Source: Octopus sinensis
Lineage: Eukaryota
Direction: 5' to 3'
Assembly (NCBI RefSeq): GCF_006345805.1
Contig: NW_021836663.1
Span: 1 to 26,923 of the forward strand
DNA: 26,923 nt
Part shown: positions 1-25,810 of the stretch, in pieces
Layout of the letters: each line of letters opens with the position of its first letter
Position numbering within the stretch: position 1 is the stretch's first letter
The notes under the pieces: generated by a model
The model's database searches: none
The model's input: the letters and a program-made list of their open reading frames with translations, nothing else
What the model was told of the DNA's origin: nothing
Made by a program: the position numbers and the translations under genes

Positions 1-1062
1 AAAAATTGCTATTGATCTCGTGCAGGATACCCAAACTGAACAACCCGAGGGAAGTACGGCGACTATTGTTGCAAAGAAGGTGAAAATGATGGTAATGAAA
101 AAAAGCGCACGAGCAATTGGCTGATAGGCAGGAGGAGAAACCTCTGCACGGCAAATATGTGACCCGCAGCAAACAAGCTGATGTTGACCAGAAGCAAACC
201 CATCAGTGGCTATGGAGCTCAGGGCTAAAAGCAGAGAGCGAAGGTTTCATCCTGGCTGCTCAAGATCAAAGCCTATTAACCCGGAACTACCAGGCCAATG
301 TGATGAAAAATGGAGCAGACCCAAAATGCCGATTCTGCAACGACATGATTGAAACAGTGGACCACCTAATCTCTGGATGTAAAGTCTTAGCACCAGTGGA
401 GTATAAATTAAGACATGACAGAGTTGGCCAATATCTCCACTGGCTAATAAGTCGGCATTACAATATCAAAACTGCCGACAAGTGGTATAATCACCACCCT
501 GAGGCTGTAACTGAAGGAGAAAATGTAACCATTCTGTGGGACTTTCCAGTACATACAGACTGAACCATCAAGGCCAATAAACCAGATATTGTTGTGAAAG
601 ACCAAAACAATAAAGTTTGCTTATTGATCGACATGAGCATCCCCTGTGATCATAATATCTCAGCGAAAGAGTTTGACAAGCTCAGAAAATATAAAGACCT
701 ACTCATTGAAATTGAGAAAATATGGCATCTCAAGGCGGTTACAATACCAGTGATCGTAGGAGCACTAGGAATGATCAAGAAGGGAACCGAAAATTATATG
801 AGAATGATCCCTGGCTTACCATCCCTACAAGAAGTGCAAAAGATTGTCTTAACTGGTACATCACACGTATTGAGAAGAGCATTGTCGATGTGAGAACTGT
901 TGCTGCTCATGTATTTTAATTTAACTTAAAAAAAAAAAAAAAGAACGAACTACTGAGTTTGGTTTAATGGCCTACCAATGTATGCTATGAGTTTCTTTGC
1001 CCTAGGAGTCGGGAAGACACTCGGCAAGAAATGGAAGTAAATTTGAAAGAAGAAAAAAAAAG
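1..1062 (+). mobile_element. 3' portion of an RLE-type non-LTR retrotransposon (R4/Dong clade), 5' end outside window; 3' UTR about 894-1062
   Basis: Translation gives KPLHGKY, LKAESEGFILAAQDQ, a CCHC knuckle CRFCNDMIETVDHLISGC, an RHD motif and the restriction-like endonuclease motifs KPDIVVKD..LIDMSIP and KLRKYKDL. The element ends at a (TAA)n tract. Confidence 0.9.
2..893 (+). pseudogene. Disrupted C-terminal part of the retrotransposon ORF (post-RT linker, CCHC knuckle, RLE nuclease)
   Basis: Frameshift in the A-run near 98-104. The in-frame TGA at 561-563 reads TD*TIKANKPD where Arg is expected, consistent with CGA>TGA CpG decay. ORFs 117-563 and 594-893 are in the same frame. Confidence 0.88.
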
Positions 1063-1086
1063 TAATAATAATAATAATAATAATAA
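1063..1086 (+). repeat. (TAA)8 microsatellite
   Basis: Direct reading. Confidence 0.98.
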
Positions 1087-1087
1087 T

Positions 1088-1300
1088 AGTTTCAAATTTT
1101 GCCACAAGGGCAGCAATTTGGGGGAAGGGGATGAGTGAATTACATCGACCCCAGTGTGTAACTGGTATTTATTTTATTGATTCCTAAAGGATGAAAGGCA
1201 AAGTCGTCCTCAGTGGAATTTGAACTCAGAACGGAGAGACAGGCGAAATGACACTAAGCTTTTCGTCTGGCACGCTGACAATTCTGCCAGCTCAACACCC
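1088..1300 (-). mobile_element. tRNA-derived SINE (family A, diverged copy)
   Basis: Minus strand reads GAGCTGGCAGAATTGTCAGC (A box-like) and GAGTTCAAATTCC (B box-like). It shares its body with the copy at 8998-9233 and ends in an ATT tail. Confidence 0.82.
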
Positions 1301-1381
<81 letters not shown>

Positions 1382-1382
1382 C

Positions 1383-1430
<48 letters not shown>
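1301..1430 (+). repeat. Compound (TAA)16-(TGA)~27 microsatellite
   Basis: Direct reading; produces the spurious poly-N/poly-D and poly-I ORFs. Confidence 0.98.
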
Positions 1431-1431
<1 letters not shown>

Positions 1432-1597
1432 TATGCTGCCCCTGGTAAATGATGGACTGATCTGTTGACCATCCATTTTTTGTGTTTAAAAAGTCAGTCC
1501 CCCTTGTTAATGCTACGTAACCTTTCTAAATGATGGACTGATCTGAAGGGGGTCATTTAATCAGTTAGACATAATAGTCTTAAGATAATTGTGTGTG

Positions 1598-1825
1598 TTA
1601 ATCTTTTTCTTACCAGATTTCTGCTGAAATGCATTGCCTTTGTTTCAATACATTTTGGAAATAGTAAAGAATTCAATGAAATAATTTTGTCCTTACTAAG
1701 CTAGTGTTTGGAACACAAGTTTATTTGAAGCCTTGATGGAAGGTTTACTTTAGATCTCTTTAAAACAGGAATTCATACAATAAAAACAAGGGTGGTTTTC
1801 AGCAGGTTGGGATCAAAAGGGTTCA
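1598..1825. mobile_element. About 225 bp MITE, piggyBac-like (TTAA-type ends), copy 1
   Basis: Left end TTAA-TCTTTTTCTTACC and right end GGGATCAAAAGGG-TTCA form degenerate TIRs. It resembles an abundant octopus MITE as I recall it. Confidence 0.6.
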
Positions 1826-1892
1826 GCCTTATTGATATTACTATCTTTTATTAAAAACAAAAAATATATGTTTTCTTGTTCATCTTTTGCAG

Positions 1893-2060
1893 ATGAGGAA
1901 ACAAAAGGTTTTGAAGATGCTGGATCAGGAAAACTCATCTATGCCATAGTTATCACTTTTATACTTTGTCTTGAAAATATCCTTCTCATAATCTGCTGTG
2001 TCAGATACAAATGGCCTCCTTACATTTGGATCAAGACCCGTGTCATCAAGTGGATATCTT
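1893..2060 (+). CDS. Putative internal exon (phase 1-1, 168 nt) encoding the stalk, single TM helix and juxtamembrane tail of an unidentified type I membrane protein; upstream exons lie outside the window
   Basis: Polypyrimidine-TTGCAG acceptor at 1892 and TT|GTAAGA donor at 2061. Reads DEETKGFEDAGSGK-LIYAIVITFILCLENILLIICCV-RYKWPPYIWIKTRVIKWIS: acidic stalk, hydrophobic stretch, then basic residues (positive-inside). Confidence 0.62.
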
Positions 2061-2128
2061 GTAAGAAATACCAGAATCCACCGGTTGAAGTATAAAAATG
2101 CTATGTTTTTTTCTTTTTCTTCTTATAG

Positions 2129-2139
2129 ACTTACAATGA
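2129..2139 (+). CDS. Putative terminal coding mini-exon (Y-L-Q-stop) after a 68-nt intron 2061-2128
   Basis: Strong pyrimidine tract ending TTATAG at 2128 and a compatible phase (T+AC TTA CAA TGA). The acceptor and stop are retained at 4811-4821 and 7268-7278. Confidence 0.45.
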
Positions 2140-2262
2140 TTGCATTAACATATTCTGTTGTGTCTGGGGAGAGTCATTTTCTTTTTGTGCCTTATGATGT
2201 AACACGTTTGATGTAGTGGTTTAGTCTCATCTTTTCAAAAACCCTGCTCAAGTGGTGGCGGG

Positions 2263-2268
2263 AATAAA
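2263..2268 (+). promoter_or_regulatory. Candidate polyadenylation signal AATAAA for cassette 1
   Basis: Lies about 125 nt after the stop; the equivalent position in cassettes 2 and 3 reads AACAAA. Confidence 0.3.
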
Positions 2269-2439
2269 CACAAAGATACTCACACACATATATTTAGACC
2301 AGGGGCTTCCACACAGTTTCCACCTCAAGAAGATCACCCTCCGGGCAGTTTCCTACTTGTTGCTAATTGTTATCTACAAATTTCATTCCCAATTTGTGGC
2401 CATACTGGGGCACTGCCTAGAAGTAAGTTTTCGTTGTTG

Positions 2440-2580
2440 AAGCCTTGTACTTATTCTATTGATCTCTTTTGCGAAACTGCTAAGTTACAGGGACATAAAC
2501 TCACCAACACCTGTTGTCAAGTAGTGGGGAGGGAGGACAAACGCAGACACAAAGACCCCTTCCCACATACACACATATGT
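2440..2580 (-). mobile_element. Decayed SINE family B fragment (shorter remnants at about 4958-5035 and 7415-7495)
   Basis: Reverse complement matches TTTACGTC..TAGCTTAGCGGTTCGGCAAAAGA of the plus-strand copy at 9556-9698. Confidence 0.65.
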
Positions 2581-2879
2581 CTGTGATTATAATTTAATAC
2601 AATTCATTTTTATTATGGATATTCAGGTAATGCATGCACCATGACACATAGTAACCACCCAGGGACAATACCTGGGGCACATCTACGAATGAATGCTCCA
2701 ATGACTTTCACAAAAATCTATATTTTTTAAGGAAATTTTCTACAAATCCACTTCAGATGGTGTAGATTCTTTTTATACTCGAATTTGATGTGACAAAATT
2801 TTCTGACAAAAAATGTGATTTTTTTCTGAAAGCTATCTCTAACAAGTCAAGAAACCACATAATAGTTATGTTTGTGTTA

Positions 2880-3480
2880 ATCTCCATGGCAATAGCAATA
2901 TGTGAACAATGGATGATTTCGATTGGCTAAAATTACTTAACTTTAAGTGCATGTAACTTTTTTATTATTTGTTTTTAGAAATAATGAGTGTGGTTTTCAT
3001 TATCAGTATCCAAAACTACATCAGAACTATATTTTTTAAAAAGTAATCAGGTGAAAATTTGAAAGACTAAGTGGTAGAAAGATACTTGTTGAAAAAAAAA
3101 ACCTTATTGCTGTGTAAACAATCATAAATCCTTGTCAAAAATCGTACCTTATCAGGCTCGACCATTACCTGTGATGTAAACTAAATTCCTGTGAAGTTAG
3201 ACTGAAGTCATTTAATTAATAAGTAAAACTAAGATCATTTCTGCTTGGCTTTCACTTCAATATCTACAATTTTTGTTCCAATTGAGTTCATATTTGGCGT
3301 ATTGATACAGTTTTGTAAACTAATCAATGCCATGAAATTCATTTTCACCACAGATCGATGCATAAACAGTTAATGGCATTTAAAATTTGTGAATTTTTGA
3401 TAATTTTAGCCAATCAAAAACCACAGACATGTAGGTGCCTGTTTCCATAACAACAAGCCAAGTTGCTTACCACGTGTTTT
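2880..3480. mobile_element. Possible decayed non-autonomous DNA transposon interior (duplicated at +2456)
   Basis: Perfect 15-bp inverted repeat GATTGGCTAAAATTA (2921-2935) / TAATTTTAGCCAATC (3401-3415); no termini or TSD identified. Confidence 0.3.
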
Positions 3481-4217
3481 TTTTCTCACTTTTCAAATGC
3501 TTAAAACATATGCAGTATGAAGTGATCATCCGATGTGCTAAAAATAACAGCTAAATAGGTCTCAAATCATGCATTTTGTTTTGTGTTTGCATAACTGTAT
3601 GAATTTTTTTTTGTGTTTGCATAATTGTATGAATTCCTGTGTGTGGAATGCAAATTCACAAAAATTTTCTGAAGATTCCAAAAAATAAAAATAAAAATGT
3701 CTTAAGGGGTTTTATGGGATGCATAAAGCAGAATTCCAACAATAATTAATTTGTTTACAGTTCACAACATGTGCAGCCATGCACAAAATGACAGCTTCCA
3801 AATCCCGTTTTCTGACTGGGTAAAAATGATCAAACTTTAAAGCCCTGAAGCTTCTTTTAATATTTTTGTGGAAAAAGTGAATTATCTCCTAAGATTCAGC
3901 ATGAAAAATTACACCAATACACAAAATTTAATTACACAAGAATGTTAGGAAGCCTCATGCAGAGTTTGCATCTAATTTAATAAATAAGAAAGTTTCAGTT
4001 TCTGTTTGAATAACGAGGAAATTAATTATGCTTAAATAACGAGTAAATGTATATGCTGCCCCTGGTAAATGATGGACTGATCTGTTGACCATCCATTTTT
4101 TGTGTTTAAAAAGTCAGTCCCCCTTGTTAATGCTACATAACCTTTCTAAATGATGGACTGATCTGAAGGGGGTCATTTAATCAGTTAGACATAATAGTCT
4201 TAAGATAATTGTGTGTG

Positions 4218-4445
4218 TTAATCCTTTTCTTACCATATTTCTGTTGAAATGCATTGCCTTTGTTTCAATAAATTTTGGAAATAGTAAAGAATTCAATGAA
4301 ATAACCTTGTCCTTACTAAGCTAGTGTTTGGAACACAAGTTTATTTGAAGCCTTGATGGAAGGTTTACTTTAGATCTCTTTAAAACAGGGAATTCATACA
4401 ATAAAAACAAGGGTGGTTTTGAGCAGTTGGGATCAAAAGGGTTCA
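4218..4445. mobile_element. Same MITE, copy 2 (carried by the cassette duplication)
   Basis: TTAA-TCCTTTTCTTACCA ... TGGGATCAAAAGGG-TTCA; about 97% identical to copy 1. Confidence 0.6.
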
Positions 4446-4512
4446 GCCTTATTGATATTACTATCTTTTATTAAAAACAAAAAGTATATGTTTTCTTGTT
4501 CATCTTTTGCAG

Positions 4513-4810
4513 ATGAGGACGCTGGAAGCAGCAGATCAGCAAATGGATCAGAAACAGCAAAGCAGCAAATGGATCTGGAACCAGCAAAGCAGTTAATGGA
4601 TCAGGAACCAGCATCCCCACCTGCGCCGTAGTCATTATTTCTGTACTTGGTCTTGTAGCCATCCTTCTCTTAATCTTCTCTGTCATATTCAAGTGGCTTC
4701 TTTACATTTGGATCATGAACCGAGTCAACGAGTGGATATCTCCTAATGAATACCAGAATCCACCGGTTAATCATACAAATGCTATGTTTTTTAATTTTTT
4801 CTTCTTATAG
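4513..4810 (+). pseudogene. Paralogous TM exon, cassette 2: frameshifted relative to the phase-1 acceptor, donor lost
   Basis: Phase-1 frame gives DEDAGSSRSANGSETAKQQMDLEPAKQLMDQEPASPPAP*. The shifted frame gives ANGSGTSKAVNGSGTSIPTCAVVIISVLGLVAILLLIFSVIFKWLLYIWIMNRVNEWISPNEYQNPPVNH..., colinear with cassette 1. The first stalk repeat is 26 nt instead of 27 nt. Confidence 0.65.
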
Positions 4811-6673
4811 ACTTTCAATGATTGCATTAGCATATTCTGTTGTGTCTGGGGAGAGTCATTTTCTTTTTGTGCCTTATGATGTAACACATTTGATGTAGTG
4901 GTTTAGCATCATCTTTTCAAAAACCCTGCTCAAGTGGTGGGGCAACAAACACAAACCCACCAACACCTGTTGTCAAGTAGTGGGGAGGGAGGACAAACGC
5001 AGACACAAAGACCCCTTCCCACATACACACATATGTCTGTGATTATAATTTAATACAATTCATTTTTATTATGGATATTCAGGTAATGCATGCACCATGA
5101 CACATAGTAACCACCCAGGGACAATACCTGGGGCACATCTACGAATGAATGCTCCAATGACTTTCACAAAAATCTATATTTTTTAAGGAAATTTTCTACA
5201 AATCCACTTCAGATGGTGTAGATTCTTTTTATACTCGAATTTGATGTGACAAAATTTTCTGACAAAAAATGTGATTTTTTTCTGAAAGCTATCTCTAACA
5301 AGTCAAGAAACCACATAATAGTTATGTTTGTGTTAATCTCCATGGCAATAGCAATATGTGAACAATGGATGATTTCGATTGGCTAAAATTACTTAACTTT
5401 AAGTGCATGTAACTTTTTTATTATTTGTTTTTAGAAATAATGAGTGTGGTTTTCATTATCAGTATCCAAAACTACATCAGAACTATATTTTTTAAAAAGT
5501 AATCAGGTGAAAATTTGAAAGACTAAGTGGTAGAAAGATACTTGTTGAAAAAAAAAACCTTATTGCTGTGTAAACAATCATAAATCCTTGTCAAAAATCG
5601 TACCTTATCAGGCTCGACCATTACCTGTGATGTAAACTAAATTCCTGTGAAGTTAGACTGAAGTCATTTAATTAATAAGTAAAACTAAGATCATTTCTGC
5701 TTGGCTTTCACTTCAATATCTACAATTTTTGTTCCAATTGAGTTCATATTTGGCGTATTGATACAGTTTTGTAAACTAATCAATGCCATGAAATTCATTT
5801 TCACCACAGATCGATGCATAAACAGTTAATGGCATTTAAAATTTGTGAATTTTTGATAATTTTAGCCAATCAAAAACCACAGACATGTAGGTGCCTGTTT
5901 CCATAACAACAAGCCAAGTTGCTTACCACGTGTTTTTTTTCTCACTTTTCAAATGCTTAAAACATATGCAGTATGAAGTGATCATCCGATGTGCTAAAAA
6001 TAACAGCTAAATAGGTCTCAAATCATGCATTTTGTTTTGTGTTTGCATAACTGTATGAATTTTTTTTTGTGTTTGCATAATTGTATGAATTCCTGTGTGT
6101 GGAATGCAAATTCACAAAAATTTTCTGAAGATTCCAAAAAATAAAAATAAAAATGTCTTAAGGGGTTTTATGGGATGCATAAAGCAGAATTCCAACAATA
6201 ATTAATTTGTTTACAGTTCACAACATGTGCAGCCATGCACAAAATGACAGCTTCCAAATCCCGTTTTCTGACTGGGTAAAAATGATCAAACTTTAAAGCC
6301 CTGAAGCTTCTTTTAATATTTTTGTGGAAAAAGTGAATTATCTCCTAAGATTCAGCATGAAAAATTACACCAATACACAAAATTTAATTACACAAGAATG
6401 TTAGGAAGCCTCATGCAGAGTTTGCATCTAATTTAATAAATAAGAAAGTTTCAGTTTCTGTTTGAATAACGAGGAAATTAATTATGCTTAAATAACGAGT
6501 AAATGTATATGCTGCCCCTGGTAAATGATGGACTGATCTGTTGACCATCCATTTTTTGTGTTTAAAAAGTCAGTCCCCCTTGTTAATGCTACATAACCTT
6601 TCTAAATGATGGACTGATCTGAAGGGGGTCATTTAATCAGTTAGACATAATAGTCTTAAGATAATTGTGTGTG

Positions 6674-6902
6674 TTAATCCTTTTCTTACCATATTTCTGT
6701 TGAAATGCATTGCCTTTGTTTCAATAAATTTTGGAAATAGTAAAGAATTCAATGAAATAACCTTGTCCTTACTAAGCTAGTGTTTGGAACACAAGTTTAT
6801 TTGAAGCCTTGATGGAAGGTTTACTTTAGATCTCTTTAAAACAGGGAATTCATACAATAAAAACAAGGGTGGTTTTGAGCAGGTTGGGATCAAAAGGGTT
6901 CA
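6674..6902. mobile_element. Same MITE, copy 3
   Basis: Nearly identical to copy 2. Confidence 0.6.
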
Positions 6903-6969
6903 GCCTTATTGATATTACTATCTTTTATTAAAAACAAAAAGTATATGTTTTCTTGTTCATCTTTTGCAG

Positions 6970-7267
6970 ATGAGGACGCTGGAAGCAGCAGATCAGCAAA
7001 TGGATCAGAAACAGCAAAGCAGCAAATGGATCTGGAACCAGCAAAGCAGTTAATGGATCAGGAACCAGCATCCCCACCTGCGCCGTAGTCATTATTTCTG
7101 TACTTGGTCTTGTAGCCATCCTTCTCTTAATCTTCTCTGTCATATTCAAGTGGCTTCTTTACATTTGGATCATGAACCGAGTCAACGAGTGGATATCTCC
7201 TAATGAATACCAGAATCCACCGGTTAATCATACAAATGCTATGTTTTTTTATTTTTTCTTCTTATAG
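6970..7267 (+). pseudogene. Paralogous TM exon, cassette 3 (essentially identical to cassette 2)
   Basis: Same sequence and same frameshift at offset +2457. Confidence 0.65.
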
Positions 7268-7955
7268 ACTTTCAATGATTGCATTAGCATATTCTGTTGT
7301 GTCTGGGGAGAGTCATTTTCTTTTTGTGCCTTATGATGTAACACATTTGATGTAGTGGTTTAGCATCATCTTTTCAAAAACCCTGCTCAAGTGGTGGGGC
7401 AACAAACACAAACCCACCAACACCGGTTGTCAAGTAGTGGGGAGGGAGGACAAACACAGACACAAAGACCCCTTCCCCCATACACACATATGTCTGTGAT
7501 TATAATTTAATGCAACTCATTTTTATTATGGATGTTCAGATAATGCATGCACCATGACATATAGTAACCACCCAGGGGCAATACCTGGGGCACATCTACA
7601 CATGAATGCTCCAATGACTTGCCTCATGACTTTCACAAAAATCTATATTTTTTAAGGAAATTTTCTACAAATCCACTTCAGATGGTGTAGATTCTTTTTA
7701 TACTGGAATTTGATGTGACAAAATTTTCTGCCAAAAAATGGGATTTGTGTTAGTACGTATCCCACCAATTTATTTTTTCATATTAAATTCTGATATAATT
7801 ACAATCTACAAACTCTGAAAGGAAGAAATTTTCACTTTTCTGAAATCTATGAAGAGACAAAGTCAGTGGAGCATATCTGTGTGTGTGTGTGTGCTTATTG
7901 CTTTAATCTAAATATCTTCAATTATAATTTTAAAGACTACACTTTTATTATTATT

Positions 7956-8150
7956 ATTGCCTTTGTTTCAATACATTTTGGAAATAGTAAAGAATTCAAT
8001 GAAATAACCTCGCCCTTACTAAGCTAGTGTTTGGAACACAAGTTTATTTGAAGCCTTGATGGAAGGTTTTTCTTTAGATCTCTTTAAAACAGGGAATTCA
8101 TACAATAAAAACAAAGGCAGTTTTGAGCAGGTTGGGATCAAAAGGGTTCA
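7956..8150. mobile_element. Same MITE, copy 4, left end missing
   Basis: Homology starts at ATTGCCTTTGTTTCAATAC and ends at AAAAGGGTTCA. Confidence 0.58.
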
Positions 8151-8217
8151 GCCTTATTGATATTACTATCTTTTATTAAAAACAAAAAGTATATGTTTTC
8201 TTGTTCATCTTTTGCAG

Positions 8218-8375
8218 ATGAGGAAACAACAAGATTTGGATCTAATGTATCCAGATGTATCCTACTTACTACAGATAGCGAAACAACATTTAAGAAGTTG
8301 ATTATCCGAGTGGGATCACTGCCAGAGCAGCTGTCTGGCTTCCGTTCCGGTGGGCATGTGAAAAGCACCATTTGA
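8218..8375 (+). other. Cassette 4 payload: same acceptor, starts DEETT like cassette 1, then unrelated non-TM sequence running into a repeat
   Basis: TTTGCAG|ATGAGGAAACAA, then DEETTRFGSNVSRCILLTTDSETTFKKLIIRVGSLPEQLSGFRSGGHVKSTI*. Sequence after about 8351 looks repeat-derived. Confidence 0.4.
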
Positions 8376-8545
8376 GCGTGATCATTACCAGCGTCGCCTT
8401 ACTGGCATGTGAACAAAACATCCTAGCGAGGTCGTTGCCAGTGCCGCTGGACTGACTCCTGTGCACGTGGCACATAAAGAAAAAAAACCATTCTGTGAAT
8501 TCCATTTTTCAACATTGGCCAACCTTGTTATAGACCTTCACAGAT

Positions 8546-8715
8546 TTCCATGCTGGCATGGGGCTGGACGCTTTGACCAGAGGTCATCAGCTGAGAAGCT
8601 GCACCGGGTCCCTGTCTGATTCAGCTTCATTTCTATGGCTGGATGACCTTTCTAATGCCAACCACTCCTGAGAGCGTCCTAGGTGCTACTGGTAGGTGGG
8701 TTTTACCACATGGCA
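8546..8715 (-). mobile_element. Decayed RTE-type 3' tail repeat
   Basis: Minus strand reads GTGGTTGGCATTAGAAAGGTCATCCAGC ... TGCCAGCATGGAAA, homologous to GTGGTTGACATTAGGAAGGGCATC at about 9390-9413. The family assignment is from memory of octopus repeats. Confidence 0.55.
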
Positions 8716-8879
8716 GAAGAACAAGCCAACCCTCTCCACTAGAGTGTGTTTCTTTAACACTCAGGCTGTGGTGGTTGGGTCTCCTTCAGTACAGGTCCCC
8801 TTCAGTACTGGTTGGCTATAATTTTAGAAACCCTGAAATTCATATTCAGGAAATATTCTTTTCTCTAAGCACAAAACCC

Positions 8880-8995
8880 GAAATTTTGGGAGAGGGGATC
8901 AGTCGCTTAGGTCGAACCCAGTATGCAACTGCTACTTAATTTATTGACCCTGAGGGGCCGAAAGGCAAAGTTAACCTCAGAATGTAAAGACAGAA
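8880..8995 (-). mobile_element. Degenerate partial SINE family A body
   Basis: Matches the GTCGA..CCCAGT..AACTGGTACTT..GACCC..GAAAGGCAAAG core of the adjacent full copy. Confidence 0.6.
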
Positions 8996-8997
8996 AT

Positions 8998-9233
8998 ACC
9001 TATTTCTTTACTACCTACAAGGGGCTAAATACAGAGGGGACAAACAAGGACAGAGAAACGGATTAAGTCGATTATATCGACCACAGTGCGTAACTGGTAC
9101 TTATTTAATCGACCCCGAAAGGATGAAAGGCAAAGTCGACCTCGGCGGAACTTGAACTCACAACGTAACGGCAGACGAAAAACGGCTACGCATTTCGCCC
9201 GGCGTGCTAACCATTCTGCCAGCTCGCTGCCTT
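8998..9233 (-). mobile_element. Well-preserved tRNA-derived SINE (family A head and core, different 3' tail from the 1088-1300 copy)
   Basis: Minus strand reads AAGGCAGCGAGC-TGGCAGAATGG (A box) ... GAGTTCAAGTTCC (B box) and shares the core GTCGACTTTGCCTTTCATCCTTTCGGGGTCGAT. Confidence 0.85.
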
Positions 9234-9319
9234 CCAGAAGGAGATAATAAAAGACTGAAATATGTGGTACATTGCTGTAGTCAAGATGACCTGCCCACCA
9301 CCACAGAATTAATATCCTA

Positions 9320-9555: not shown

Positions 9556-9698
9556 CTGACACCGATGTTGGGATGTTTACGTCTCCATAGCTTAGCGGTT
9601 CGGCAAAAGAATAAGTCCTGGGTCGATTTGTTCGAATAAAGGCGATGCTACAGCATGGCCGCAATTAAAGGACTGAAACAAATAAAAAATAAAAGGAT
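9556..9698 (+). mobile_element. SINE family B 3' half, preceded by its internal CA/TA microsatellite (about 9430-9540)
   Basis: ACCGATGTTGGGATGTTTACGTC..CTTAGCGGTTCGGCAAAAGA..CAGCATGGCCG..GACTGAAAC..AAATAAAA tail; homologous pieces at 2440-2580 (-) and about 16715-16760 (+). Confidence 0.7.
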
Positions 9699-9982
9699 AT
9701 ATACATACATACATACATACATACATACACACACATACATACATACATACACACATACATACACGCATACACACACATACATACACACACACACTCACAC
9801 ACACATAAATACATATATACGTGCATACGTCCATACATACATACATACACACATACATACATACACACATACATAACACATACATACATACACACATACA
9901 TAACACATACATACATACATACACACATGCATACATACATACATGCACATACATACATACATACATACATACATACATACAT

Positions 9983-10013
<31 letters not shown>

Positions 10014-10316
10014 GACACTCACACACACACATAAATACATACATACGTGCTTACGTAGATACATACATACATACATACATACACACATACATACATACAT
10101 ACATACATACACACACATACATACATACATACACACACATACATACATACATACATACATACATGCATACATACATACGTACATACACACATGCATACAT
10201 ACATACATACATACACATATACACACACTCACACACACATATAAATACATACATACGTACATACGTACATACATACATACACACACATACATACATACAT
10301 ACTTACATACATACGT

Positions 10317-10353
<37 letters not shown>

Positions 10354-10441
10354 TAAATACATACATACGTGCATACGTACATACATGCATATTTACATAC
10401 ATAAATACATACATACATACATACATACATGTATACATACA

Positions 10442-10475
<34 letters not shown>

Positions 10476-10508
10476 CATACATACATACATACATACATAC
10501 ATGCATAC

Positions 10509-10557
<49 letters not shown>

Positions 10558-10560: not shown

Positions 10561-11102
10561 GCAAAAGAGGGAGTGGTGTTTCCAAGCAAGAAAAGAAATA
10601 TATAGAAAAATGTGTTGCAGAAAATGCACTTAAATTTCGAGACCTCTACCGTAACAAATGCTTGTGTGTGTTACCAAGAAATTTATAGAGAGTGAAAAGA
10701 AAAAGAGAATTCTCAGCAAACAATTCTAGACTTGTGTTTTAAAAAGAAATCTACAAGTCCGTCTACGAGTGCTTGTGAATCGGTGATCACATTTTCAAGT
10801 GATGGTGTGCGTGAGTCTAATGCGAGTGACAGTGATTCAGAAAACAATTCTAATAATAATACTTCTTATTATAAATGATCTCAACATTCTTTTTACTTTA
10901 CATAAAATATTCTTTACATTCTGCTGTTGTTTTATTGTCATTTATTTTCGAGTATCACAAATTTTATGGATAAAATATTTTTCTGGGAACGAATTACGAT
11001 TTATAACATTGCTATTATTGGAAATTATGGCTCCGTTTTGCGAGTTTTTGCTTTACGAGCGATCTCTGGGAACAAGTTAACTTGTATATCGAGGCATTAC
11101 TG
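10561..11102 (+). mobile_element. 3' relic of a pogo/Tigger-type DNA transposon (transposase C-terminus and right TIR, TA at 11103-11104)
   Basis: Frame of 10669 reads MHLNFETSTVTNACVCYQEIYRE*KEKENSQQTILDLCFKK, like the Tigger/TIGD C-terminus. The element ends CGAGGCATTACTG|TA (reverse complement TA|CAGTAATGCCTCG, pogo-like TIR). Confidence 0.75.
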
Positions 11103-11355
11103 TATATACCTACCTACCTCCCTACATTCATACATACATACATACATAATACATACATACATACACACACACACATATATATATACACACACACAACATA
11201 CGCCAGGCAACCTCTTCCGAGTAAGTTTTGTATATATATATATATATGTATGAGTGTATGTATGTATGCATATATACATACATATATATATACATCTCCA
11301 AGAGATCTGGGTTCAAGTCCCATAGTTGGTTCTTGAAATTAGATGGAATGAAATG

Positions 11356-11499: not shown

Positions 11500-14472
11500 A
11501 AGTCAAGTTTTGTTCAAGTAGTGAGTTCTTGTTGGTGAGTTGTATCCAATTATGGGTGGCTTATCTGGTATTCTTTGAAGGAATCAATCCAGACTCTGTT
11601 TGAAGTTGATGGGATCCTTTTCCTCTTTGATCTCCCTCGGGACAATGTTAAATAGGGCAGGCCTGTTGAGGAAAAGAAATTATGTTGCAGTGTACATGTA
11701 TGTTGTGATCTTGAATTTGGCAGGGGACGTATAGCCCGTGGTCCAAGTCTTGGATGAACCTTGAAGCTAATGTTTAGGTCGTTTGGGCAAAGTTGGCGGT
11801 ATATTCTCCACATCGTACAAATGATGTACCGCTCACGGCGACGCTGGAGGGAGTAAAGTTTCAAGGCTTTAAGGCGATCCCAATAATCGAGAGCAGCCAT
11901 GCCTTCAATTTGTTTAGTGAGTGCCCTCTGGGGTGACTCAATTCTGGAGGTGTTTTGTCTTGTGTGAGGAGACCACAGTGGGTAGCAGTATTGAAGGTGT
12001 GGCCGTACAAAGGATGAAAAAAGTGGTATGATGACACCTTGTTCTCTGGACCGGAAAGTTCTTAAGATCCAGGAACTCATCCTACGAGAGCTATATCGAC
12101 CTTCTTGTTGATGTGTGCACTCCAACTGAGATCGTCCATCAACAATTACACCCAGGTCTCTGATATTGTTAGGCTGTGAGCGGTTCCCCTGAAGGAAGAG
12201 AGTATGGCTGTTTTAGTGAGGAGTTTCTTCCAAATGCATCAGCTCAAATTTCCCTCATTCAGTTGCATTTTGTTTCTGTCTGCCCATTGACTCACAGCAT
12301 ATAGATCAGACTGGAGTTAAGTTCGGTCTGCTTCTTCATTGACGATTTGCTGGAGCTTAGTGTCATCAGCGAATATTTTCACTTTGCAGTGATGTACGAC
12401 ACTGGAAAGGTCGTTTACGTAAATTATGAAGAGTAGCGGACCCAAAACAGTTCCCTGGGGAACACCGCTGGTGACTTTTGCTGGGTTTGAGTGGACTCCA
12501 TCAACTACAACATGTTGTGTTCTATTCGCCAGGAAATACTGAATCCAGCGTAGAACTTTTCCACGGATTCCAACATTTGCCAATTTTGAGAGTAGGATGT
12601 TATGGTCTACCCTGTCGAACGCTTTACTGAAGTCAAGATATATGACGTCAGAGTTCGAACCTGTTCCCAAGGCTTTGAGTACATCTTCAATGTGGTGTAA
12701 GAGCTGTGTTAGACAGTCCCTGCCACAGCGAAAGCCATGTTGATTTGAATTTAGGAGTTTGTGGGTCTCCAGGAAGTCAGCTATCCTTGATCTTAACACT
12801 CTTTCAAACACTTTGATGATGTGGGAGGTGAGTGAGATTGGGCGATAGTTGACTGCGAGGGATCTGTTTCCCTGTTTGAAAACCGGGATGACCGACTGGG
12901 ATAGAAACTGTTTCGGTACATAACCTGCGTCTAACGAATTTCTCCAGAGGTTGGTCAGAGGGACTGCAAGTTGATATCTACATTCCTTCAGGAGACTAGC
13001 GGGAAATCTATCAGGGCCTACAGCAGAGTAATGTTTGACCTCATTTATTGCTGCTACGATGTCGGTGGCAGTGAAGGTTATGTCTGCGATTTTGTGTTGG
13101 GAGTCAACTTCGTTCGTTTCACTCACATCAATATCAGTGGGAACACTGAAGACAGAGCAATATTGTTTCTGCAGTATTTCTGCCATTTCTTTAGCATCGT
13201 GTTGGGGACTGCCATTATCATCAATCAATGGCCCAATGGGTGAGACAGTGGTTCTATGCTTATTTGCATAAGAATAGAACACTTTTGGGTTCTGTTTGAT
13301 GTTTTTTGATTACCCACTGTTCCTCCACAGCTCTTTGATTTTCAATGGAGGTTTTCATGTTAGTCTGCAGATGAAGTTTTTCCAGCTCTAGTCTTTTCAT
13401 TGTTGTGAATGTGGATGTTGTGTGTGGGAATATTTTAATGGTTGATTTTTGTTGAGTCTTTTGATGCGCCTGATGAGTTTTTTTTCTTTTTAGGGAGCCG
13501 GTTTCTGTTTGTGTTAGTAGATTTCTTGGGAGCGTGTTTAGAGCATGTATAGGTGACAATGGTTTCAAAGTGCTGCCACGCGGTCTCAATATGAGGGGAA
13601 TTGAGAGAAAAAGACCAGTCGATGGAAGACAGATCCTTTCTGATTGTTCCCCAGTCCGCTTTGTGGAAGTTTATGTTGTCAAATGGGTGCCATGGAGTGG
13701 GATTGGCTGGTTTGGTTTTTATATGTCGGGAATTAAGATTGCAGAGTACCATGTCGTGGTCTAAGAGGAGAGTTTTTTCGACTGAAATGCTGTGAACGTA
13801 GCTAGAGTGATTGGTCAATACCAGATCCAAGATCGTTTTATTCTGTCTCGTTGGTTCAAACACTAGCAGAGTCAGGAAATACTCATCCATCAGATTAAAG
13901 AGCAGTTCTGCTGCTGCCCTATCTGATGTAGAGCACTTGCCTAACTTTGGAGTATTTGTGGGTCAGTTCACATGAGGGAGGTTAAAATCACCCATCACTA
14001 GTATGTTTCCGGAGTGGTACTTCCGAAGGAAGGACTTGACTTTGCTAAGGCACTCTTCAAAGTACTTTAGAGGTGCCTGGGGAGGCCTGTAAAGACCAAC
14101 AATGGTTATGTCCTTGGCTTTGTTGTATAGTGATACCGATTCACAGTAGCCATTGGAAAATGTGTCCTTGGCATCAAGTGAAAAGGAGTCATGGATAAAG
14201 ATGGCTGTCCCTCCCTTATTTCGGTCTGTGCGATCCGCACGAACAATGGTGAAATCTTTTATTTTCACCTCTGCGTCCATATGGGTGTTGTTCAGGTGAG
14301 TCTCGGTAAGGATAAAGAAAGGGAAGCAATGTGCCATTTCGGCAAGCCAACACTCTATATATGGGATCTTCTATTTTTGGGCAATAATTGATGGGTTGAT
14401 GCCATGTACATTTAATAGGAATGTCGAGGTAAGGGAAGTTGGTAATGGGTGAGTGGTCCTTGTGATTTGCAT
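11500..14472 (-). pseudogene. LINE ORF2 (APE endonuclease plus reverse transcriptase), multiply disrupted
   Basis: APE motifs: LLNVHG, ILTETHL, YRPP, GDFNLP, LDLVLTN, LDH in place of SDH. RT motifs: GPD, RPISLTS, QHGF, YLDFSKAFD, GVPQGTVLGPLLF, FADD. C-terminal LYSLQRRRERY. Stops at 14371, 13963 and 12317 and many frameshifts. Confidence 0.95.
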
Positions 14473-15659
14473 AGATGGGTGATGGCTCGCTGGATCTCCT
14501 GGCTTAGGTCGGCCTTCATATTTTCCAGGTATGTCAGTAAAAAAGAGTTACTTGTTTGGTTTGCAACTTGGTCAGAGGATACATATTTCAAGTTGGCGTT
14601 ATTTGGTGTTTTTTCATGGTTCTGTCTACGTTGTTTGATTGTAGGAGGGGAAACGTGGTTGTATTTTGTTCTTGTTGTCCTAGATTTCCTCTGTTCCTGT
14701 TTATATCTATTCTGTGATCGTTTTGTGCCCTTCAGATGGTGGTGGTTGCATTCTGGGTTCAGGCACATCCTTTGTGAGACAGAAGTTTGGCACAGTTTAG
14801 GATGGAATAAGGTGCATCCATTGCCTCTTATGCATCCGTATTTAGGATCAGAACCATAGATTCTGTATTTAGGACAGTATTTGGGGTGGAGGTGGGGGCA
14901 ATTTTTTCCTGTTATACCGTATGGACAGGTGCCCATAGCAAGTCTACGACATAAGGTCGGATGGGGAAAAGCACAGCTGGGGCCAAATCTACAATTGCCC
15001 TTAGAATAGTAACGGCAGGGGTTTTTATTTGGTTGTAGTAGTGGTTTTTCTATTTTGGCAGTAGTAGCAGTGGTGTTAGAAGCAGCTTGTTGATTTTGTG
15101 ATGGTGGGTTCTGGCTTGCCAGAATGTGGTCAAATCTGCAGCTGCCTTGAGAGTAGTAGTGGCAGATAGTTTTACGCGGATGTAGTAGTGATTTTCCTTT
15201 TGTGGCAGTAGTGGGGAGTTGTTTTTGTTGTAGCAGCATTGGAACTTGACTAGTGGTAGTATTAGAGTGTTGTTGTTGTTGTTGTTGTTGTTTTTGTTGC
15301 TGTAGCGAAGGTGAAACTTGATTTGGTTCATCAGGTGCTGTTGTCAATGGAAGTAGGTCAGTTGATTGTTGCTGTTGAAGTGACCCCTGACCTGTTGGAA
15401 TTTGGTCATTTGTTGTACTGGATTCGTTGGCAAGAATGGCCTTTAGTGTTGCCATGTGCGCGTGAAAAATAGGGAATATCCTAACAATTTCTTTTAATTT
15501 ATTTTCTATCTGTTTTACAGATCTGTGAAAGGATTTTTTCGTTAAATCCTCAGTTATTTTACTGTAAACATTAGCTTCGTTGTGATGGATGAACCAAGCG
15601 TTAATCATTGCAGTAATTTCATTTTCAACCCAGCGGCGTTTTTGAAAATTATTGGCCAT
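14412..15659 (-). CDS. LINE ORF1, 415 aa from MANNF: N-terminal Myb/SANT-like trihelix, Q/T-rich linker, one partial and four CCCH-type zinc fingers
   Basis: Trihelix pattern KRRWVENEITAMINAW..VYSKITEDLTKKSFHRSVKQIENKLKEI. Fingers: C-x7-C-x5-C-x3-H, C-x7-C-x8-C-x3-H, C-x13-C-x5-C-x3-H and C-x8-C-x4-C-x3-H. The upstream ATG at 15728 lies in a microsatellite. Confidence 0.85.
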   Translation of the reverse strand: MANNFQKRRWVENEITAMINAWFIHHNEANVYSKITEDLTKKSFHRSVKQIENKLKEIVRIFPIFHAHMATLKAILANESSTTNDQIPTGQGSLQQQQSTDLLPLTTAPDEPNQVSPSLQQQKQQQQQQQHSNTTTSQVPMLLQQKQLPTTATKGKSLLHPRKTICHYYSQGSCRFDHILASQNPPSQNQQAASNTTATTAKIEKPLLQPNKNPCRYYSKGNCRFGPSCAFPHPTLCRRLAMGTCPYGITGKNCPHLHPKYCPKYRIYGSDPKYGCIRGNGCTLFHPKLCQTSVSQRMCLNPECNHHHLKGTKRSQNRYKQEQRKSRTTRTKYNHVSPPTIKQRRQNHEKTPNNANLKYVSSDQVANQTSNSFLLTYLENMKADLSQEIQRAITHLCKSQGPLTHYQLPLPRHSY

Positions 15660-16219
15660 ATTCAGTGGGGTAGTGTTGTGTAATATATATATATATGTAT
15701 GTGTATGCGTGTATATGTATATGTACACCAGTTATTGATGGCTTGATGTAAAATAGTGAATACACGGTTGAAAAGTTTGTGTCGATATACTCGGTAAATA
15801 GTGAATACACCGTTGGAAAGTTTGTGTCGATATACTCGGAAATTCGTGGCTTGTGTGTGTGAGAGTTCAGTGTAATTAGTACAATCTAATTAGTACAATC
15901 GGGATGAGCGGTGTGTTTGATACAGATCAAGAAAAAAGAATTGTACTCACGGGACTAGTTTTAGAACTAGTCTTGGGTTTAGTATTTAGTTTTGGGTTGT
16001 TCCTCTTTGTTCAGGTTGTATATAGATTTGTATAAATTCATCCTCCGATGGTAGTAAAAGAGTAGTATAGTAGGATTGTAGAGATTAAAAACAAGGAGAG
16101 ATTATGTTAGCTTGAGTTGAGTTGAGTTAAATTGAGTTGAAAAATGCTTCTTTGGTTAGTTACTGACGGGAGCTATAAAAAGTACGTCTTGTCACGACGA
16201 CTGCCTGACTGCTAATCAC

Positions 16220-19700: not shown

Positions 19701-21355
19701 GTGTGTGTGTGGGTGTGGGTGCATACGTGTGTATGTGTGTGTGTGCGTGTGTGTTTGTGTGTGCTTGTGTGTGTGTGTTTGTGCTTTTGTGTGCGTGTGT
19801 GTGTGCGTGCGTGTGTGTGTGTGTTCCTGTTTATGTGTTTGTGTGTGTGCGTGGTGTGTGTGTGCATGTGCTTGTGTGCGTGTGTGTGAGTGTGTGTGTG
19901 TGTGTGTTTGTTTGTCTGTGTGTGTGTGGGTGTGAGTGTGTGCGCGACCGTGTGTGTGTGTGTGTCGTGTGTGTGTGTGTATGTGTGTGTGTGTGTGTGC
20001 GTGTGTATGTGTGTGCGTGTGTGTGCGTGTGTGTGTATGTGTGTGTGTGTGTGCGTGTTTGTGTTTGCGTGTGTGCGTGTGTGTGCGTGTGTGTTTGTGT
20101 GTGTGCGTGTATTTGTGTGCGTGTGTGTGTGCGTGTGTGTGTATGTGTGTGTGTGTGTGTGTGCGTGTGTGTGTGTGCGTGTGTATGTGTGTACGTGCGC
20201 GTGTGTATATGTGTGTGCGTGTGTGGTGTGTGTGTGTGTGTATGTGTGCGTGTTTGTGTGTGTGCGTGTGTGTGTGTGTGAGTGTCTGTGCGTGTGGGCG
20301 TGCGTGTGTGTGTGTGTGTGTTTGTCTGTGTGTGTGTGTGGGTGTGGGTGCATACGTGTGTATGTGTGTGTGTGCGTGTGTGTTTGTGTGTGCTTGTGTG
20401 TGTGTGTTTGTGCTTTTGTGTGCGTGTGTGTGTGCGTGCGTGTGTGTGTGTGTTCCTGTTTATGTGTTTGTGTGTGTGCGTGTGTGTGTGCATGTGCTTG
20501 TGTGCGTGTGTGTGAGTGTGTGTGTGTGTGTGTTTGTTTGTCTGTGTGTGTGTGGGTGTGAGTGTGTGCGCGACCGTGTGTGTGTGTGTGTCGTGTGTGT
20601 GTGTATATGTGTGTTTGTCTGTGCATGTGTATGTAGATGTGAGTGTGTGTGCGTGCGTGTGTGTGTGTGTATGTGTGCGTGTTTGTGTTTGCGTGTGTGC
20701 GTGTGTGTGCGTGTGTGTGTGCGTTTATTTGCTTGTGTGTGTGTGCGTGCGCGTGTGTGTCTGTGTGTGTGTATGTGTGTGCGTGTGTGTGTGCGTGTGT
20801 ATGTGTGTACGTGCGCGTGTGTATATGTGTGTGCGTGTGTGTGTGTGTGTGTGCTAGTTTGTGTGTGCGTGTGTGTGCGTATGTGTGTGGGCGTGTGAAT
20901 GTATGTGTGTGTGTGCGTGTTTGTGCGTGTGTGTGTGTTTTTTTCCTGTGCGTTTGTGCGTGCGTGTGTGTGCGTGTGTTTGCGCGTGTGTATGTGTGTG
21001 TGCGTGTGTGTGTGCTAGTTTGTGTGTGCGTGTGTGTGCGTGTGTGCTTGTGCGTGTATGTGTGTGTTAGTCTGCGTGCGTGTGTGTGTGTGTGCGTGCG
21101 TGCGTGTGTCTGTGCGTGTGTGTGTGTGCGTGTGTGCACGTACTTGTGTTTGTGTGTGCGTGAGTGTGTATGTGTGTTTGTGTGTTAGTGTGTTTGCTTG
21201 TGTGTGTGTGTGTGAGTTTGTTTGTGCGTGTGTGTGTTTGCGTGCGTGTGCGCGTGTGTGTTTGTTGGTTAGTTTGTGTGTGCGTGTGTGTGTAGTGGGG
21301 GTTCGTGTGCGTGTGAGCGTTTGTGCGTGTGTGTGTGAGTGCGTGTGTGTGTGTG
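16800..21355 (+). repeat. About 4.5 kb degenerate (TG)n/(TGCG) tract with internal higher-order duplications
   Basis: Direct reading. Lines at 18121, 18421 and 18721 start identically (300-bp period) and a block at about 19648 recurs at about 20280. Confidence 0.97.
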
Positions 21356-24997: not shown

Positions 24998-25009
24998 AGG
25001 CGCAATGAT

Positions 25010-25481: not shown

Positions 25482-25810
25482 CCCCCCCTCCTCATCTAAC
25501 CTCACCCCCCTCCTCACCTATCCTTTCTCCCCCCGACCCCTACTTCTTCAGTCCTTCATCCTTTCACCCCTACTCCCCTTCCCTTCTTCCCTCTTTCTCC
25601 CTCCCTCTTCCCCTTCCCTCTGCTCCCTCACTCCCTCTCTCCCCCTTCTCTCTCCCCCTCTCCCTCTTTCCTCCTTCATCCCCCTCATCCCCTTCCTTCT
25701 CCCCACCTCTCCTCCCCCTTCTCCTCCCCCTCTTCTTCCCCTCCTTCTCTCCCCCGTCTTCCCCCCCTCCCCTCTTCTCCCTCCCCCTCTTCTCCCCCTC
25801 CCCCTCTTCT
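25482..25810 (+). repeat. About 330 bp C/T polypyrimidine low-complexity tract
   Basis: Direct reading; almost exclusively C and T. Confidence 0.95.

Follow-up and report, generated by a model that had tools for sequence, protein, structure and literature searches.

A tandemly copied membrane-anchor exon with near-identical flanks and a fast-changing coding block at the 3' end of an octopod-specific Ig-like gene

Tandem-duplicated, mutually exclusive exons are known, and exon 17 of Drosophila Dscam1 offers two alternative transmembrane (TM) exons; in the immunoglobulin (Ig) heavy chain, the membrane and the secreted 3' ends are produced by a choice between splicing and polyadenylation. In the class I and class II genes of the major histocompatibility complex (MHC) and in KIR-type genes, the introns are homogenised by recombination and the selected exons remain diverse, and the genes of snake-venom PLA2 and of conotoxins combine accelerated exons with conserved introns. 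Furthermore, in CDKN2A (INK4a/ARF), among others, an exon can be read in either of two frames according to which exon precedes it, and basigin and embigin consist of two Ig domains, a single TM helix with a buried glutamate, and a short tail. Here, we analyse the entire unplaced contig VCDQ01005367.1 of the Octopus sinensis assembly GCA_006345805.1 (26,923 bases, hereafter the window), which is the 3' end of an uncharacterised, octopod-specific gene for an Ig-like type-I membrane protein whose anchor exon has been tandemly copied.

The exon duplication, the gene conversion and the fast evolution of the TM exon at this locus are real, and what they form is not a new splicing system. The account that we regard as reasonably probable is that of a tandem triplication of the anchor cassette, with flanks homogenised by recombination, a fast, mosaic TM exon, and a second copy frame-shifted into a cytoplasmic tail.

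The four cassettes begin at AG acceptors with exon starts at 1893, 4513, 6970 and 8218, where an earlier note on this DNA had placed them, and share the acceptor sequence ..ttcttgttcatcttttgcag/ATGAGGA.. (slashes mark splice junctions throughout). LOC118762047, the sole gene model on the contig (101 amino acids), starts at an ATG within the polypyrimidine tract 5' of 1893, crosses the cassette-1 exon to a GT donor at 2090 and joins the cassette-2 acceptor at 4513. Since it begins inside a polypyrimidine tract, the model is plainly partial and represents a fragment of a larger gene. The contig holds just 1.4 kb 5' of cassette 1, consisting of a retroelement fragment and microsatellites; a scan of the open reading frames (ORFs) of the window found no shared upstream (Ig) exons, the remaining ORFs being retroelement pieces, an STPR-repeat ORF and microsatellite artefacts.

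Cassette 1, which like the other cassettes lies on the forward strand, is preceded by an intron end (1432 to 1892) with a polypyrimidine tract and the AG acceptor at 1891 to 1892. This intron end is 97.6 to 97.8% identical to 4052 to 4512 and 6508 to 6969, and its identity to the intron that precedes the TM exon of the O. vulgaris locus L002 introduced below (33351 to 33810) is 97.2%. The exon itself (1893 to 2095) encodes the juxtamembrane segment, the TM helix and a short cytoplasmic tail, (D)EETKGFEDAGSGKLIYAIVITFILCLENILLIICCVRYKWPPYIWIKTRVIKWISCKKYQNPPVEV followed by a stop, in a frame that requires one preceding base (x/AT GAG..). In particular, a GT donor lies inside the exon at 2090 and the stop codon at 2093 to 2095, giving the arrangement GAA/GTA TAA at 2087 to 2095 and an exon of 197 nucleotides (nt) up to the donor; the same arrangement occurs in the compared loci L002, L003 and L005, and is used in O. 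vulgaris isoforms. Downstream of the stop, a conserved stretch (2096 to 2258), either 3' untranslated region (UTR) or intron, is 95% identical to 4777 to 4940 and 7234 to 7397, and the poly(A) signal scan located an AATAAA at 2263, just past this stretch and about 170 nt beyond the stop.

A word-indexed protein search with the exon peptides matched only the window's own model. The exhaustive HMMER scan returned P0002 (E = 1e-19), P0003 (E = 3e-14) and P0004 (E = 1.5e-11), always at the C-terminal end of Ig-like octopus proteins, which bears out the earlier suggestion that these are coding exons of a receptor-like family. The C-terminal exon peptide is 50 to 66% identical to family members by tblastn, and one HMMER match opened the way to 27 relatives, none of them named and each from either Octopus or Argonauta. 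Among 1.8 billion representative proteins, the exon peptide is confined to this family of octopod Ig-like type-I membrane proteins (LOC115229017, LOC115231405 and LOC115225115 type), and in the approximately 170 kb of related loci compared, the cassette was found only at the 3' ends of family genes. A literature search on the LOC identifiers gave no mention of these loci. The family layout comprises a signal peptide, two to five modules of about 95 residues with the consensus ..PNMKRPVVWKC.NYKYECDRTCA..LWI..VT..C..W.F.., a stalk, a single TM helix and a short tail. The Ig-like nature of the ectodomain modules is supported by proteins of the relatives: the modules score up to 35.5 bits against Pfam I-set, and the AlphaFold model of P0004 predicts two beta-sandwiches, with a pLDDT (predicted local distance difference test) value above 90, plus the TM helix, the best PDB matches of this model in Foldseek being titin Z1Z2, embigin/basigin, OPCML and antibody domains. 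The role of the protein is inferred.

Two observations were made on other members. The more distant P0025 and P0026 (O. bimaculoides and O. vulgaris) have gene models with three consecutive TM segments, and P0018, P0045 and P0049 (LOC115230628 and its O. vulgaris counterpart) show duplicated TETTTTKDAE stalk exons that are linked by a read-through acceptor (..IYYSSFAG..). These three-TM and duplicated-stalk models suggest that the 3' cassette has been tandemly duplicated more than once across the family.

The comparison included L002, the O. vulgaris gene of P0034, P0033 and P0010; L003, a second O. sinensis contig with LOC115229017; and L004 and L005, a neighbouring pair of paralogues in O. 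vulgaris. Collinear and 95 to 97.6% identical, L002 and L003 are orthologues that hold three cassettes each, ordered as cassettes 1, 2/3 and 4 of the window. It follows that the triplication is older than the split between O. sinensis and O. vulgaris, which is placed about 2.5 million years (My) ago (PMC10700109). L002, L005 and L004 each match portions of the window at 90 to 97%, and no single O. vulgaris orthologue is singled out: the cassette region matches L002 and L005 better than L004, and positions 10625 to 11336 and 25434 to 26652 are 90 to 91% identical to DNA just 3' of the P0021 gene (L004 24550 to 27862).

As for L003 itself, at 17363 to 17600 it is without 16.3 kb of L002 (17403 to 33722), a segment that holds the third Ig exon and the greater part of the long intron; the junction of this gap lies at a microsatellite adjoining the TM exon, and corresponds to a structural variant or an assembly collapse. 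Moreover, the first cassette of L003 has two acceptors 12 nt apart, at 17678 and 17690 (tag/GACTTGAAGCAG/ATGAAG), which give rise to the LOC115229017 isoforms X1 (..RLEADEETK..) and X2 (..NEETK..).

The divergence between cassettes 1 and 2 that had drawn attention to the array was recounted. Upstream, 461 nt differ by nine substitutions and two one-base indels (11 positions, 2.4%), whereas the 48 codons from GCC to GTT differ at 28 of 144 nt (19.4%), with 21 replacement codons and four synonymous-only codons; all of these figures agree with the earlier count. Downstream, where about 5 differences in 130 nt had been given, we found slightly more, that is, seven substitutions and one indel in 163 nt. 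The contrast between exon and flanks is beyond chance (Fisher p = 1.4e-11) and occurs also in O. vulgaris and in the second O. sinensis contig, so that the view of the TM exon as unusually variable stands as an observation, but recent homogenisation of the flanks explains part of it. In the window, silent exon sites (5/31.7) have diverged 5- to 7-fold more than the flanks (16/621; p = 0.002), and the third codon positions (6/48) exceed the flanks as well (p = 0.002 to 0.003, silent sites included). Since the silent exon sites are older than the flanks, part of the contrast in the window reflects an older exon between younger flanks, and not selection on the exon. By the Nei-Gojobori method, the pair gives dN = 0.239 (replacement changes) and dS = 0.177 (silent changes), with a ratio of 1.35 (p = 0.62); thus, the strong diversifying selection that had been read from this pair falls short of significance.

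The column-by-column divergence profile, combined with breakpoint mapping, revealed the structure of the array. From 4052 to 4957, cassette 2 departs from cassette 3 at only two positions, in a comparison of 916 nt, and the cassette-2 unit differs from unit 1 at none over 1,550 nt (4958 to 6507). Cassette 2 matches cassette 3 to the left of a switch located within 10 nt, and unit 1 to the right of it; it is the exact hybrid produced by one 2,457-bp unequal crossover between the regions downstream of units 1 and 3. The crossover interval (no strand assigned) lies at 4958 to 4967, with equivalents at 2502 to 2511 and 7415 to 7424. The right-hand parent of the hybrid is the forward-strand spacer at 2502 to 4051, 100% identical to 4958 to 6507 and with zero differences after 2501/4957. 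Unit 1 alone contains an insertion (2259 to 2492, no strand assigned), a gap with respect to units 2 and 3, which is partly a dispersed repeat with short matches scattered across other loci. It follows from the crossover that the contig earlier held two full cassettes plus cassette 4 and, from the near identity of cassettes 2 and 3, that the window has only two independent TM exons. Four independent cassettes, as initially described, are thus ruled out by the profile and the breakpoints, cassette 3 being nearly a copy of cassette 2 and cassette 4 being without a TM segment. The 2,457-bp duplication is very recent or, less likely, an assembly error.

The intron end upstream of cassette 2 (4052 to 4512) is of the cassette-1 (X1) type, unlike that of the O. 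vulgaris second cassette, and the segment from 3920 to 4533 is 96.1% identical to L002 33217 to 33831. The cassette-2 exon, as delimited in annotated transcripts (4513 to 4630), contains 27-nt repeats at 4522 to 4613, among which a 26-nt unit (4543 to 4568) disrupts the frame; frame 0 reads MRTLEAADQQMDQ.. and frame 2 reads ..QQMDLEPAKQLMDQEPASPPAP up to a TAG at 4628 to 4630. A TM-like open frame (AVVIISVLGLVAILLLIFSVIFKW...), paralogous to the cassette-1 TM, occupies 4625 to 4810; being 3' of the tail-frame stop, it is 3' UTR in the annotated isoforms. In both cassettes 2 and 3, the TM frame opens with TGA and is one base off the phase of the cassette-1 acceptor because of the 1-nt deletion in the 26-nt unit, which lies at 7000 to 7025 in cassette 3. 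Both O. sinensis copies of the cassette-2 exon, in the window and in L003, carry a single-base deletion, located in different repeat units, and both frames are broken.

Cassette 3 (6508 to 7745) comprises an intron end (6508 to 6969), an exon (6970 to 7087) and a TM-like frame (7082 to 7267), with homology fading by about 7745, and the window from 6981 to 8482 is collinear with O. vulgaris L002 35437 to 36944 (94.9%). Upstream of cassette 4, the intron end (7956 to 8217) is 95.4% identical to 1633 to 1892. The cassette-4 pseudo-exon (8218 to 8375) combines an AG acceptor with 51 open codons (EETTRFGSNVSRC...STI, then a stop), and it shares the intron end and the first approximately 20 nt of the exon with the other cassettes, the TM segment being absent. 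Its counterpart in O. vulgaris and in the second O. sinensis contig reads gaag/ATTAGC where the window reads gcag/ATGAGG. The sequence 3' of cassette 4 had been taken for an octopus short interspersed element, an identification that we dropped, as it matches only the orthologous positions in the compared loci.

The near identity of the flanks extends well beyond this contig. Divergence over the final 197 intron nt is 1 to 8% in a set of nine cassettes that represents three loci and two species, and the 128 nt after the exon diverge by 1 to 10% among the cassettes compared. In L002 and L003, just these final 197 intron nt of the second cassette are common to the other cassettes. In the window, the approximately 590 nt that precede cassettes 2 and 3 belong to the type that precedes cassette 1 in O. 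vulgaris (96%), which indicates that the intron of the second cassette has been replaced by a cassette-1 copy. Furthermore, L005 and L002, different genes 75 kb apart, are 93 to 97% identical in the cassette region and 72 to 77% in the Ig-exon regions. Together, the hybrid cassette 2, the replaced intron and the likeness of L005 to L002 show that the cassette region has repeatedly undergone unequal crossover and gene conversion. Scans of 1 to 9300 for Rfam families and transfer RNAs gave no match, and an intronic non-coding RNA was ruled out on these grounds as the cause of the conserved flanks.

The exon between these flanks was compared as an aligned 144-nt TM block of the first cassettes (c1, Y1 and X1) and the second cassettes (c2, Y2 and X2) of the window (c), L003 (Y) and L002 (X), to which a seventh exon from L005 (Z1) was added, for a total of seven cassettes in a comparison of five loci. 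The first-cassette exons differ from one another at 21 to 34 positions and the second-cassette exons at 4 to 10. The variable sites conflict: c1 and Y1 are alike in the 5' part (EETK.., LCLEN), c1 and X1 share ICCVR, and Y1 and X2 share a six-site tract. In particular, 53 of the 136 pairs of informative sites are incompatible with a single tree, and they are spatially clustered (PHI-like p = 0.002). Conflicting, clustered site patterns of this kind identify the exon as a recombinant mosaic built by exchange, in support of the import of exon sequence by gene conversion that the earlier note had proposed.

A second property of the exon is its excess of amino acid replacements. Fifty-two of 58 variable-site events are non-synonymous, against the 76% expected from the observed mix of transitions and transversions (p = 0.007); the changes fall on codon positions 1, 2 and 3 in the numbers 21, 26 and 11. 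The events amount to 0.46 per non-synonymous site, 0.20 per synonymous site and 0.14 per flank site, the first rate being about threefold the other two. Over the seven cassettes, 59.5 replacement events against 7.5 silent ones give a ratio of 2.3 (p = 0.0097), and the cassette-1 exons alone give 2.7 to 3.2 (p = 0.007 to 0.013). Whenever a cassette-1-type exon (c1, Y1, X1 or Z1) is one of the pair, dN/dS is above 1, with 21 values that range from 1.35 to 6.8. The three cassette-2 copies (that of the window, which equals cassette 3, with Y2 of L003 and X2 of L002) have an event ratio of 1.2, as in unconstrained sequence, and pairwise values scattered from 0.29 to 10 that rest on 4 to 10 differences. 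The claim of diversifying selection thus finds partial, suggestive support in the excess over seven cassettes (p of about 0.01, in a small and recombinant sample), but not in the cassette 1/2 pair alone. It is possible to hypothesize, from these sequence comparisons, that selection is the cause of the excess.

Between the orthologous O. vulgaris P0054 and O. sinensis P0055, the ectodomains are about 98% identical and the TM exons only about 60%. Retained in all of this variation, and also in a fragment from O. bimaculoides, are the hydrophobic length, the juxtamembrane KW/Y(I/V)W..RV..W motif (where the slash separates alternatives) and the YQNPP(V)E end, which indicates that the exon is constrained as an anchor, yet free or driven to change its residues. 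The cassette-1 TM of the window has a Glu-Asn pair in mid-helix (LCLENIL), as does that of L003, whereas other members have LVAIL. If the replacement excess holds, the anchor and its short tail, and not the ectodomain, evolve fastest, which is the reverse of what is usual in surface receptors and points to selection on partner subunits, sorting or intramembrane signalling.

How the exons are used can be followed in L002. Its last Ig exon ends in phase 1 (..AAA G/gt), a phase compatible with the cassette-1 acceptor, and the TM exon X1 (33811 to 33986), which closes with GTT GAA/GTA TAA, lies 14.3 kb further 3'. The internal 5' splice site before the stop is accompanied by both annotated kinds of isoform: O. 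vulgaris P0010 terminates in ..PPVEV, whereas P0033 and P0034 splice on (..PPVE/MRVPEAADQQ..PASPPAP). The last exon of P0033 and P0034 is X2 (L002 35345 to 35539), whose frame 0 reads MRVPEAADQQTDQEAADQQMDLEP...QLMDQEPASPPAP and then stops; since this stop sits where the TM-like coding starts, the second TM copy is 3' UTR in these two proteins. The alternative forms of the O. vulgaris annotation were added by PASA from Iso-Seq and RNA-seq (PMC10700109); that genome study drew on PRJNA718058, PRJNA791920, PRJNA547720 and E-MTAB-3957. The NCBI models on L003 and on the window independently make the join from cassette 1 to cassette 2, and every annotated isoform that reaches cassette 2 also holds cassette 1 (P0001, P0004, P0032, P0033 and P0034). 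For this contig itself, the splicing is predicted from the sequence.

These joins do not agree with four alternative terminal TM exons, as the annotated isoforms place cassettes 1 and 2 in series, with cassette 2 in another frame. What remains of that idea is that a choice between termination and further splicing does exist; the usage of the cassettes and the number of independent exons had been described wrongly. The TM frame of cassette 2 was used by no annotated protein among 5.8 billion. In O. vulgaris, X2 is open in the ancestral phase too, (D)EGAGSSRSANGSGSS...NGSGTSIPTCAVVIISVLGLVAILLLIFSVIFKW.., which would give an NGS-repeat stalk and a TM, so that its two open frames span 65 and 118+ codons; only frame 0 is annotated, and both are broken in the window. 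An in-frame swap of cassette 2 for cassette 1 is therefore possible in O. vulgaris X2 (frame 2), but not in the window or L003 as assembled. The 27-nt repeat is stop-free in all three frames, and thus the openness of a frame there is no evidence of selection. A limited search for docking/selector pairing, in which the first 2.5 kb of the L002 intron were compared with the cassette region, gave as its best reverse-complement match 15 nt (E = 0.008), not upstream of the TM exons; as nothing convincing was present in this stretch, a Dscam-like pairing was not retained.

In the scenario that we favor, an ancestral cassette, made up of the intron end, the juxtamembrane/TM/tail exon and about 0.7 kb of downstream sequence, would have been triplicated in tandem before the O. 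sinensis/O. vulgaris split. Cassette 1 would be the working TM exon, which either ends the message, with a stop 3 nt past the GT, or splices to cassette 2. The latter would be read one frame off the ancestral TM frame, its expanded 27-nt repeat yielding an acidic, Q-rich tail that halts right where the old TM coding starts, and the third ancestral cassette (cassette 4 of the window) would be decaying. In this contig, an extra unequal crossover duplicated 2,457 bp and generated cassettes 2 and 3. The flanks would be near-identical because unequal crossing-over and gene conversion continue to homogenise the cassette region, among neighbouring cassettes as well as from one paralogous gene to another. 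The exon would stay distinct for two reasons: it is a patchwork of older segments swapped among family members, and amino acid changes in cassette 1 would accumulate about 2 to 3 times faster than silent or flank changes, under diversifying or otherwise positive selection. Of these elements, the anatomy, the family membership, the hybrid nature of cassette 2, the homogenisation of the flanks, the mosaic and the excess of replacements are shown by the sequences compared.

Several points weigh against this scenario. The orthology of the window is ambiguous, as its flanks are about 95% identical to the O. vulgaris loci, compared with 96 to 97.6% between L003 and L002. The selection tests concern 48 codons of recombinant, non-independent sequences, so that p values of about 0.01 are suggestive and not decisive, and the cassette 1/2 pair reaches a ratio of just 1.35 (p = 0.62). 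Exon use is predicted by two annotation pipelines, and the model in the window is partial. The contig has no chromosomal placement, and an assembly artefact could underlie the perfect 2.46-kb duplication; the 1-nt deletions in O. sinensis may be long-read assembly errors or real decay and, if real, this gene copy may be dying. The last two points also invite the view that misjoined haplotypes or reads in an unplaced long-read contig created the array and its near-identical introns. The 26.9-kb size of the contig, the 1,550-nt and 916-nt stretches with 0 to 2 differences, and single-base deletions typical of long-read consensus errors fit such an artefact, but the three cassettes and the exon/flank contrast appear independently in the chromosome assembly of O. 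vulgaris and in another O. sinensis contig. Only the extra copy (cassette 2) and the 1-nt deletions could still be artefacts, and as an explanation of the whole an artefact is highly improbable.

A neutral history, in which conversion recently reached the flanks and missed an older paralogous exon, and in which cassettes 2 to 4, and perhaps the whole copy, are decaying, appears unlikely, although much of the record is compatible with it. It would account for the insignificant ratio of the window pair, for silent sites more diverged than the flanks, for the frameshifts in both O. sinensis cassette-2 exons and for the dead third-cassette acceptor in L002 and L003, and the unequal crossover and interlocus homogenisation on which it draws are demonstrated. 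However, it predicts a ratio near 1 and an even use of codon positions, which disagrees with the 52:6 split of events and its skew toward the first two positions. It also sits poorly with the fact that all cassette-1 exons, including the O. bimaculoides fragment at a distance of 34 My, keep their TM character, the tail motif KW/YIW..RV..W..YQNPP and the layout of stop and donor, and it leaves unexplained why the conversion tracts stop at the exon on both sides in five loci. The replacement excess, together with the near-identical ectodomains that bear dissimilar TM exons, would instead suit mutually exclusive terminal anchors on one ectodomain, with strong diversifying selection on the anchor alone creating the contrast; intact acceptors of equal phase in all four window cassettes, and the O. 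vulgaris second cassette, open from its acceptor in the cassette-1 phase through the NGS stalk and a full TM for 118+ codons, fit this as well. We regard it as quite unlikely, however, given that the cassette-2 TM frame occurs in no annotated protein, that the annotated isoforms use cassettes 1 and 2 serially, that the cassette-2/3 TM frame opens with a stop codon as assembled, and that cassette 4 has no TM and cassette 3 duplicates cassette 2. Moreover, the cassette-2 copies evolve at a ratio of 1.2, docking/selector complementarity was not found in the O. vulgaris intron, and the silent exon sites of the window are older than the flanks, an outcome that selection on amino acids cannot yield.

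Doubtful, and offered as a speculation, is the further proposal that cassette 2 is dual-coding under splicing control, giving the frame-0 acidic, Q-rich tail when joined to cassette 1 and, in the ancestral frame, an N-glycosylated NGS-repeat stalk with an uncharged TM when cassette 1 is skipped. If true, the same ectodomain could have either a TM with a glutamate (LCLENI) or a neutral TM as its anchor, in a way that resembles paired activating/inhibitory receptors, and the exon would evolve fast across the octopus family because diverse anchors are selected for.

The remainder of the contig is AT-rich, with many microsatellites and retroelement fragments. On the forward strand, positions 1 to 900 contain the 3' end of the ORF of a retrotransposon without long terminal repeats, including a zf-RVT reverse-transcriptase zinc-binding domain (E = 6.6e-6), followed by poly(A), a short repeat, and (TAA)n and (ATG)n microsatellites at 1063 to 1431; a similar ATG/TAA microsatellite adjoins the first cassette of L003 on its upstream side. 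On the reverse strand, a long interspersed element-like sequence (11550 to 15728) is broken into several ORFs, namely, a CCCH zinc-finger/Myb-like ORF1 (14412 to 15728), an endonuclease (13963 to 14337) and a reverse transcriptase (12317 to 13282). A 4.5-kb GT-rich satellite with the 14-nt unit GTGTGTGTGCGTGT (16804 to 21355) and an 830-bp (ATAC)n array (9697 to 10527) are the source of most of the long spurious ORFs of the window. The STPR-repeat ORF (23239 to 24033, forward strand; Pfam PF21107, E = 8e-13) is followed by ORFs at 24104 to 24607 and 24792 to 25277, for which Pfam gave no match, and this GC-rich block probably belongs to another mobile element.

Among the many lineage-specific families of unknown function in octopus genomes, the present family forms a cluster of uncharacterised Ig-like surface proteins, for which numerous isoforms are predicted. 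The annotated model is here a fragment, and the predicted C termini are altered where the O. sinensis assembly has one-base deletions. The locus offers a clean and datable example of tandem exon duplication, of frame-shifted reuse of the copy as a new cytoplasmic tail, and of ongoing crossover and conversion, which wipe out the divergence of the introns while the differences between the exons remain.

Compared with the systems named at the outset, the octopus locus resembles Dscam1 in that an Ig-superfamily membrane protein has a tandemly duplicated TM exon whose homologous copies lie in the same acceptor phase; different from Dscam1, the octopus copies are annotated serially, the second in another frame, with unequal exon lengths and without a detected selector/docking pairing. 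The 5' splice site inside the exon, 3 nt before the stop, at which the message ends or splices on, recalls the Ig heavy chain, but both octopus products retain the TM, and the choice only adds or omits the cytoplasmic tail. As in CDKN2A, the cassette-2 exon of O. vulgaris is open in two frames, the frame being set by the preceding 197-nt cassette-1 exon, although only one of the two is annotated as used and both are broken in the window. The overall architecture is that of basigin and embigin, with a mid-TM glutamate in cassette 1 of the window and in L003 (LCLENI), whereas no sequence relationship is detectable and the glutamate is absent from other family members (LVAIL).

With PLA2 and the conotoxins, the locus has in common an exon divergence greater than that of the introns and dN greater than dS; those are secreted toxins that change by point substitution, whereas in the octopus gene the recombination is demonstrable and the product is a membrane anchor. 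Different from the MHC and KIR-type genes, the variable part is here a juxtamembrane/TM/tail exon and not a ligand-binding ectodomain, and the comparison spans paralogous cassettes and species instead of alleles. With these genes the locus shares flanks that are more alike than the exon, a conversion mosaic, an excess of replacements and membership in a clustered, fast-evolving Ig-like family.

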